Made by a program: the position numbers and the translations under genes
From: Macrostomum lignano
Lineage: Eukaryota
Direction of reading: 5' to 3'
DNA: 64,000 bases
Assembly: GCA_002269645.1 (NCBI GenBank)
Contig: NIVC01001811.1
Span: 186,001 to 250,000, forward strand
The notes under the pieces: generated by a model
Told to the model about the DNA's origin: nothing
Database searches by the model: none
What the model saw: the letters and a program-made list of their open reading frames with translations, nothing else
In this document: positions 13,553-14,735 of the stretch, piece by piece
Layout of the letters: every line of letters begins with the position of its first letter
Position numbering within the stretch: position 1 is the first letter of the stretch

Positions 13553-14735
13553 ATGAAAAGGATTCGACTGTCGACTCTGCCCTGCCTCCTGCTGCTCAGC
13601 TGCCTGCTGGCGGCGACTTCAAGCGCCAAGGTGCTGTCGAACTTCGCCGCGGTCAAGACCCGACGCTGCCCCACCGCAGCCGCCTCTCCGCTGCCGCACC
13701 GCCTGGCCAGCAAGCTGCAGTGCGCCGCCGCCTGCTCCCGACTGCCCACCTGCAACGCATTCCACTTCGACATCGCCACCCGCCTGTGTTACCATGGAGA
13801 CGCGTGTTCCCAACTCGAACAATGGACTGACGGCGACTGCGACTCTTACAAGTACACCGATGTGCTGTGCGGAGACTGCGGTGAGCGGCTCAGTGGCTGC
13901 TGTCTTGTCAATTAATCTGTATCGCTCCAATGAAGTCATTTGCTTTGTTTAAATAGATTATGCATTTATCACTGCAGAGTCTTCTGAGCCCTTGGTGAAA
14001 CAGCTCAAGCTGAAGCTGTTCTACAAGTTCTCTCGGAGCGGTCTGAAGAATGAGGTCAACCGGAGACTGTCCTGTCTCAGGGCTCACGACGTGACAATTG
14101 ATGCAGCTGGTGCTCACTTCAAGGGCAACACGAGCTCCTACTTGAGCACTGAGACTCCCGGTTTTGAGAAGCTTCTGGGAGTCGGTTCCACCTACTCGAC
14201 TTTTGCGCAGGTTCGGCACGCCATGACTAAGGATGAGTGAGTTGAAACTGTCTGTGATGCTTTGAAACCGCTGCTCACCTTCTAGCCGCGCCTCTACCGC
14301 TGCACAAGCAGGTATCAGTACTACAGCCGGTTCCAAGAGTGCTCAGGAACCAACATCGGCAGCTCTCTGATCAAGCGCTCAGAGTATTTCTACGGTTTCG
14401 CCTGGCTGTCCAGCGGCGGCGGGAGTGTCGGCGAGAGAATTTTCGGATTTTCGTCTTTTTTTCTACCGACTGATGGCTCGGTGCGTCTCCTGTCGGCTGG
14501 AGTCACCTTCAACGGGCTGGAGCAGAAGCACATGTATCAGAACGGCACGCTGGTTGCGACGTCTTCGTTTAGTAAAAGTTCTTTGAATTCTTCAGCGGCG
14601 TCCTTTCAGTGCCTGCGACTCGGATTCGGGCCCGCAAGTGACAGATGTCTGAGCGGCACAATGAGTTGCTTTGCACTGAGCAGTGAGATGCTCAACGAGT
14701 CTGAGTTTCGGCTGCTCCAGCAGCTCTGCTACTGA
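13553..14735 (+). CDS. Secreted PAN/Apple + LamG(ConA-like) protein, copy B, 336 aa
   Basis: Exons 13553-13880, 13978-14236 and 14312-14735 (phases 1 and 2, GTGAG donors, CAG acceptors). Hydrophobic leader; PAN pattern [23 protein letters not shown]; LamG-like pattern LFYKF...HFKGNTSSY...STFAQV...AGVTFN...HMYQNG...LRLG...LSGTMSCF...ML.ESEF..L. Confidence 0.85.

Follow-up and report, generated by a model that had tools for sequence, protein, structure and literature searches.

Homogenised 5′ block in seven old PAN/jelly-roll paralogs of Macrostomum lignano points to recurrent gene conversion

Seven old paralogous genes of the flatworm Macrostomum lignano carry in their 5′ part a near-identical tract of about 525 bp that includes an intron and has abrupt ends. 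Such a tract had been described in an earlier note made from the DNA letters alone, and blastn, alignment and change-point analysis all recover it. Judging from sequence comparison, we regard recurrent non-crossover interlocus gene conversion, limited to the 5′ part of the old paralogs, as the probable cause (with a probability of roughly 0.8). Conversion was also the explanation proposed in the note, and it is upheld by the low neutral divergence of the block, by its mosaic variants and by groupings that disagree with those of the variable half.

Results

Arrangement of the gene array

The window analysed here is a 64,000-nt stretch of contig NIVC01001811.1 (positions 186,001 to 250,000, forward strand). 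The seven paralogs, in the following called A to G, have three exons each and lie at 11.4-40.2 kb of the window, in both orientations and within 29 kb. Their product is predicted to be a secreted protein with a PAN/Apple module and a ConA-like jelly roll. Besides B, the six further copies were retrieved from the window by blastn and tblastn. The features are listed below by their position in the window.

11459..12619, minus strand: gene A, with its own leader type, inverted and head-to-head with B; block at about 12026-12547
13553..14735, plus strand: gene B, 336 aa, intact; exons 13553-13880, 13978-14236 and 14312-14735
13655..14178, plus strand: homogenised block of copy B, comprising most of exon 1 (PAN-coding), the whole of intron 1 (13881-13977) and 200 nt from the start of exon 2
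22384..23635, minus strand: gene C, 355 aa, inverted and head-to-head with D; block at about 23011-23530
24789..25960, plus strand: gene D, 332 aa, intact, with the B/C/D/G-type leader; block at 24873-25393
28009..29254, plus strand: gene E, 337 aa, intact, with its own leader; block at 28123-28643
31226..31553, plus strand: exon-3 remnant of an eighth family member, frameshifted, without the block
34073..35299, plus strand: gene F, with its own leader; block at 34196-34713
37407..37734, plus strand: second copy of the eighth-member exon-3 remnant, within the E/F tandem duplication
38995..40147, plus strand: gene G, 325 aa, intact; block from 39079 to about 39585
375-10478, plus strand: neighbouring gene
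42023-43985, minus strand: neighbouring gene
45913-47464, plus strand: neighbouring gene
54378-62075, minus strand: neighbouring gene

Two copies are frameshifted in exon 1, gene A by a GC insertion at 12362-12363 and gene F by a TG deletion after 34325. The rest of both genes is open and would encode 325 aa in A and 343 aa in F if corrected. Both 2-bp frameshifts sit at dinucleotide repeats within the homogenised block. A and F may have become pseudogenes recently and go on exchanging sequence, or the two frameshifts may be 2-bp consensus errors.

From the block onward, gene E is a recent tandem duplicate of F. This duplication measures ~6.1 kb (28123-32104 matches 34208-38285), and the eighth-member exon-3 remnant was doubled inside it.

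Genes A and B (with 12619-13553 between them) and genes C and D (with 23635-24789 between them) form head-to-head pairs, in which the blocks are inverted repeats of ~520 bp with roughly 94-96% identity, 1.1-1.3 kb apart. This arrangement should favour intrachromatid exchange within A/B and C/D.

A full-length non-LTR retrotransposon occupies 17737-22394 on the minus strand, with an ORF2 of 1272 aa (endonuclease, RT, RNase H) and an ORF1 of 279 aa. Its 5′ end adjoins the 3′ end of gene C (22384-22453), with ORF1 starting at 22394. The usual stop codon after "...QQLCY" is gone from gene C, and 20 extra codons lead to a stop at 22384, approximately at the start of ORF1.

On one side, the array is flanked by FANCD2-like and GINS (Sld5-family) genes, and on the other by genes for an alpha-2-macroglobulin/TEP-like protein (TED domain), a retroelement integrase and a listerin-like protein (UBC-like and RING). 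Long tandem-repeat arrays were found at 6638-7682, 44401-45360, 52096-53369, 57897-58726, 60656-61177 and 63289-64000, with copy offsets of about 60-85 bp (e.g., ~60, ~72 and ~84 bp). Several of them lie in or beside the FANCD2-like and listerin-like genes.

A family restricted to Macrostomum

The family is restricted to Macrostomum and is uncharacterised. Its sole close database relatives are two UniProt proteins of M. lignano, here called P0001 and P0002 (A0A1I8HM75). Scanning 1.84 billion representative proteins exhaustively with HMMER yielded only 16 relatives, and of the ten relative clusters looked up, nine belonged to M. lignano and one was an ENA fragment. A profile search with the family alignment yielded no additional close relatives. 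Literature searches on Macrostomum together with gene conversion, PAN/lectin and Apple domain returned nothing on the A-G family. One distant member, P0016 on contig NIVC01002407.1, is single-copy, with no array within 10 kb on either side.

The relatives are named "Apple domain-containing" in UniProt. In Pfam, the PAN matches stay below threshold (PAN_1 18.8 bits, cut-off 21.4; PAN_4 18.2 bits, cut-off 27). Compared with PDB PAN domains, the family profile matched 6ryw (2.5e-4), MIC4 (3.8e-3) and the hepatocyte growth factor (HGF) N domain, and the PAN cysteines C39, C57, C61, C67 and C79 are nearly invariant. For the C-terminal half, Pfam Laminin_G_3 scored 17.4 bits against a cut-off of 27.6, over residues 260-327 only. 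An AlphaFold2 model of B, based on a 14-sequence alignment (pLDDT 81, pTM 0.75), places the PAN module at about residues 35-109 and a beta-sandwich at about residues 115-336, with ~15 strands over residues 121-319. Foldseek matched this sandwich best with the lectin-like N-subdomain of the receptor-binding (Hc) domains of clostridial neurotoxins, with E about 1e-8. The model thus supports a predicted PAN module plus ConA-like jelly roll at the fold level, but not strict membership in LamG. In the model, the 3′ block boundary falls at B residue 176, in the loop that connects a short helix to strand 182-191. The earlier note had set the breakpoint inside an exon and inside a LamG domain; it does lie within exon 2 and within the beta-sandwich, the LamG assignment holding at the fold level only.

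In P0001, which is encoded at another locus, the PAN domain is identical at the protein level to the type found in the window, the variable half is different, and the block is left earlier in exon 2. The first 52 residues of P0002 are identical to the leader of E. P0002 combines this leader and the E-specific 5′ block edge with a variable half of the D type that differs from D at a few residues. Most of its PAN domain is skipped, and it has an odd internal splice. It represents either a true recombinant locus elsewhere or a gene model fusing two neighbours.

P0004 is a predicted fusion of two tandem units from a second M. lignano subfamily. At the protein level, these units are about 90% identical in PAN, 37-53% in their leaders and 17-30% in their C-terminal halves. 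P0003, from elsewhere in the genome, has about 64-68% overall identity to the block-carrying members. PAN thus looks homogenised within clusters and diverged between them, which at this protein level would be a signature of concerted evolution.

Extent and edges of the homogenised block

In a blastn search of the window with B 13401-14800, genes D, E, F and G matched at 92-96% identity, with matches ending at B 14164-14179, and A and C matched at about 81% along the whole gene. Across B 13655-14178 all copies are 92-96% identical, and identity becomes near-random within a few bases beyond. Relative to C, D and G, the block reaches further in the 5′ direction, to about B 13578.

Averaged over the 21 copy pairs, identity inside the block is 95.9% in its exon 1 part, 86.7% in intron 1 and 94.0% in its exon 2 part. 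Outside, the corresponding means are 55% in the 250 nt upstream, 60% in the exon 2 tail, 50% in intron 2, 57.7% in exon 3 and 52% downstream. Unrelated DNA scores ~50% with the aligner used, and intron 2 and the flanks are at 50-52%. The block is genuine and far above chance. For ~200 nt of exon 2, the earlier note had counted six differences separating B from D, and this count is exact (97.0%).

Maximum-likelihood change-points were determined for all 21 pairs and separate a tract with identities of 0.89-0.96 from surroundings with 0.27-0.43. On the 5′ side, the edge was placed at 13576-13582 for comparisons among B, C, D and G, at 13655 for those with A or F, and at 13667-13670 for those with E. 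The signal-peptide core that B, C, D and G have in common is inside this extended 5′ tract. On the 3′ side, D, E and F part from every other copy at 14176-14184 and G does so at 14161-14164; A, B and C remain similar to each other up to 14220-14225. The tract ends are therefore nested and variable: P0001 leaves first, then G, then D, E and F, and finally A, B and C. The edges had been called sharp, and they are abrupt in all 21 pairs, but their positions vary between copies. Gene G was likewise correctly seen to leave the block slightly earlier, ~15 nt before the other copies, and it has a divergent patch at the equivalent of B 14113-14131.

A perfect 10-bp palindrome, AGAAGCTTCT (14167-14176), is the only feature found at the 3′ edge of the block. 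It is present in B, D, E and F, disrupted in A and C (AGAAGTTTCT), and missing from G. By a rough estimate, such a palindrome would lie within 10 bp of an edge by chance in about 2% of cases.

Mosaic structure and conflict with the variable half

Only 20 sites of the block are informative among the seven sequences. In the four-gamete test, 110 of the 190 pairs of these sites are incompatible. The Hudson-Kaplan bound Rm indicates at least eight events in about 500 bp of block, and the PHI test (p = 0.016) shows nearby sites to be more compatible than distant ones. The most frequent site partitions are AFG (five sites) and BCD (four sites), and there are also sites supporting ABC, EFG, DF, ACD, AEG, BFG, CD and ACG. 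Intron 1 groups A, F and G as well as B, C and D, in conflict with the variable half, where only (A,B,C) and (E,F) are clear groups.

E and F, the recent duplicates, share 97.4% identity across the 3′ flank and 93.9% across exon 3, yet their identity drops to 75% in intron 1 and to 91.6% in the exon 1 part of the block. The block of F is 98.2% identical to the blocks of B, C and D. Because the block is more diverged between E and F than exon 3 and the 3′ flank, at least one of the two must have been overwritten after the duplication. Moreover, A and C are inverted relative to the rest, yet homogenised to an equal degree, which argues for non-crossover conversion and against unequal crossing-over alone. 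A point against conversion is that block similarity, judged by eye, does not obviously depend on how far apart the copies lie.

Alternatively, a single young 5′ module could have been joined to several old 3′ halves in one or a few recent chimera-forming events, such as unequal crossing-over or a duplication whose junction fell within the block, after which the copies diverged without ongoing conversion. Such an origin would explain why the 3′ edge coincides to a few bases in the ABC, D and EF lineages, and this common edge (14176-14184) could stem from a single ancestral chimera instead of independent tract ends. The alignable E/F duplication starts exactly at the 5′ edge of the block (28123/34208), and P0002 unites an E-type leader with a D-type variable half, although, with its odd internal splice, it may be a prediction fusing two genes. 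Chimeras would leave tree-like variation, however, whereas the block is heavily reticulate, as Rm and PHI indicate. For E and F, the block should then not be more diverged than the flanks, the inverted copies would need extra inversions, and both the 5′ and the 3′ edges vary among copies. On balance, we consider it unlikely that chimera formation without continued conversion accounts for the block.

The quality of the assembly bears on the same data, as mixed reads from different paralogs could have homogenised or mosaicised the block consensus during assembly or polishing. The genome is repeat-rich, with many tandem repeats and transposable elements in the window, and the frameshifts of A and F may stem from errors in the consensus. 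Nevertheless, the 525-bp block is far below long-read length, and unique sequence borders each copy on either side. Between copies, 4-8% differences remain, including copy-specific indels in intron 1, and the linked runs of variants form coherent haplotypes (AFG versus BCD). P0001 and P0002, furthermore, match no copy of the window exactly and so derive from a different annotation or from loci elsewhere, yet carry the block with other variable halves. An artefact is accordingly a very improbable explanation overall and unlikely as the origin of the block itself, but short-read polishing could have blurred or made part of the fine-scale mosaic.

Divergence at neutral sites

In the block, mean dS is 0.11 (0.03-0.21) and dN 0.032 (Nei-Gojobori), with pS about 0.10. 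The variable half has pS values of 0.49-0.82 in every pair but E-F and is saturated; for E-F, its dS is 0.114. Intron 2 and the flanks, i.e., promoters and 3′ regions, are unalignable between copies. Synonymous divergence thus differs widely between inside (~0.1) and outside (saturation), a comparison on which the earlier note had staked its reading beforehand. Intron 1 had been described as about as conserved as the exons. In terms of identity it is somewhat less so (75-98%), and it carries copy-specific indels of 2-6 nt, but its substitution-only distance of 0.105 equals the synonymous divergence of the block. Since synonymous sites and intron 1 both diverge by ~0.1 and the sequence outside is saturated, selection at the protein level does not account for the block, whereas homogenisation of the whole tract does; the note had argued that such selection would not suffice alone.

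GC3 is 0.74-0.81 and 0.64-0.70 in the block and 0.53-0.67 elsewhere. The excess is modest, and amino-acid composition confounds it, the PAN region being rich in Ala, Pro and Arg; its direction is that expected from GC-biased conversion.

These values also bear on the possibility that whole genes were duplicated recently and that the 3′ half was then accelerated under positive selection. Secreted, lineage-restricted proteins encoded in tandem arrays are a typical setting for families of that kind (PMC2955719). For A to G, the saturation of synonymous sites in the variable half is at odds with a recent duplication, as is the lack of alignable intron 2, promoter and 3′ flank sequence; dN/dS is below 1 where measurable, and divergence extends over the whole domain. 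The model of SSSGP or venom-peptide genes, in which promoter, UTR and introns are conserved and dN exceeds dS, was not recovered in the array, where upstream, downstream and intron 2 sequences are at random level. We regard accelerated evolution of young duplicates as highly improbable.

Selection on the DNA or RNA itself, through an antisense ORF, a structured intron RNA or a regulatory element, could in principle preserve coding and non-coding sites together, and antisense ORFs of 142-300 aa do extend over the block in A, B, C and F. Against it, intron 1 accepts indels of 2-6 nt, and a reticulate pattern is not expected from such selection, which leaves it with hardly any probability as the explanation.

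Two specific candidates were rejected in this region. For a hidden RNA, an Rfam search over 13400-14900 was empty at E ≤ 1, and intron 1 folds about as well as its shuffles (z = +0.43). For an overlapping antisense gene, pN/pS was lowest in the sense frame (0.24, 0.48), compared with 0.69 in the open antisense frame.

Nature of the variable half

The variable halves differ because the paralogs are old, as seen from the saturated dS and from the unalignable intron 2 and flanks. In A, B, C, D, E and G, the variable half has 20 invariant residues, including four cysteines and core motifs. Mean identity is 0.41 in strands, 0.33 in loops and 0.31 in helices. Where measurable, dN/dS is 0.18-0.56, with no value above 1; for most pairs it is uninterpretable because dS is saturated. 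No hypervariable or positively selected binding region, and no sign of a dedicated device for diversification, was found among the seven copies. On these comparisons, the variable half is the result of ordinary old paralog divergence across the whole domain.

The earlier note had contrasted a constant scaffold with diverging ligand-binding sheets and had likened the design to diversified recognition systems. Neither idea is supported by the measurements. The constant part is not a separate scaffold, since the jelly roll that the block edge divides takes its first five strands from it, and the divergence of the remainder is old, spread over the domain and accompanied by dN/dS below 1. Snail FREPs, amphioxus VCBPs and sea-urchin 185/333 proteins are secreted lectin-like products of multigene arrays with conserved and variable parts. 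By analogy, the A-G array may be compared with them as a secreted lectin-like array with conserved and variable parts, but its variation is old divergence over the whole domain, without hypervariability or a signal of positive selection. We consider it unlikely that the array is a germline constant/variable repertoire for lectin-like recognition, in which exchange within the block would both preserve a common PAN "handle" and bring leaders and promoters together with different variable halves, A, F and the remnants acting as donors. The one lead in this direction is A0A1I8HM75, because it pairs an E-type leader with a D-type variable half. If this reading were true, the array would be a flatworm counterpart of FREP, VCBP or 185/333-type systems.

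Discussion

The array presents what characterises interlocus conversion: an abruptly bounded tract, homogenised neutral sites, and a conflict between tract and flank together with an internal mosaic. We infer from this combination that the 5′ parts of seven old paralogs have been repeatedly overwritten by each other through ectopic, non-crossover conversion. The converted part would run from the PAN domain through intron 1 to the fifth strand of the jelly roll and, in four copies, would also take in the signal peptide. A single event would cover between some tens and a few hundred bases, and the events together would hold ~525-600 bp at 92-96% identity, coding and non-coding sequence alike. 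Spread into the 3′ part or into upstream DNA would be blocked by a divergence too high for heteroduplex formation, and selection against converted variants may add to the limits of the tract. As conversion would be blocked in diverged flanking sequence, the edges would be abrupt and self-reinforcing. A uniform PAN module may, in addition, be of functional benefit.

Several known gene families resemble the array in part. In the human G-gamma/A-gamma globin genes, the 5′ part including introns is near-identical, and an abrupt intragenic boundary separates it from a diverged 3′ part. These genes are two direct repeats, and their boundary lies at a simple-sequence tract in an intron, whereas the array has seven copies in both orientations and a boundary within coding sequence.

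In the protocadherin clusters of fugu, zebrafish and human, regional conversion acts in the variable exons (PMC1852091, citing Noonan et al. 2004). As there, tandem paralogs in our array have one coding part homogenised including synonymous sites and another part kept distinct, and the pattern is cluster-specific. In the protocadherins, GC3 is raised in the converted part (PMC1852091), the direction in which the confounded GC3 excess of the array also points. The protocadherins are, however, homogenised at the 3′ end of one large exon, with identity > 99% (PMC1852091). The A-G tract is a 5′ part that spans an intron at 92-96% identity, includes inverted copies and belongs to an uncharacterised flatworm family.

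The SSSGP-1 genes of the Hessian fly are seven clustered secreted-protein genes, one of them inverted, in about 15 kb (PMC2955719). Their signal-peptide region and intron are highly conserved and the mature region is diverged, for which the authors invoke concerted homogenisation (PMC2955719). Seven clustered genes for secreted proteins with a conserved 5′ region and intron and a diverged remainder are common to both arrays. In the SSSGPs, promoters and UTRs are conserved as well and strong positive selection acts on the variable part (PMC2955719), in contrast to the unrelated promoters, intron 2 and 3′ flanks, saturated dS and dN/dS < 1 of the A-G array.

Tandem HMA4 paralogs of Arabidopsis halleri show a mosaic of high and low divergence that is attributed to interlocus gene conversion (bioRxiv 10.1101/2025.10.29.685298). 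Both cases are tandem with mosaic divergence, and the A-G array is ancient outside the tract.

The array is an example of a well-known process and reveals no new mechanism or kind of system. It is, however, a very clean natural case of conversion covering part of a domain, with edges inside exons and inside a folded domain, with copies in both orientations, and with a recent internal duplicate, E/F, that dates the exchanges as ongoing. For work on this family, tree building, orthology assignment, primers and probes (for RNAi or in-situ work) that rely on the 5′ 600 bp mislead or cross-react, so that the 3′ half is required in Macrostomum, and short-read mapping and polishing are unsafe within the tract. 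The uniform PAN module combined with diverged jelly rolls invites functional study.
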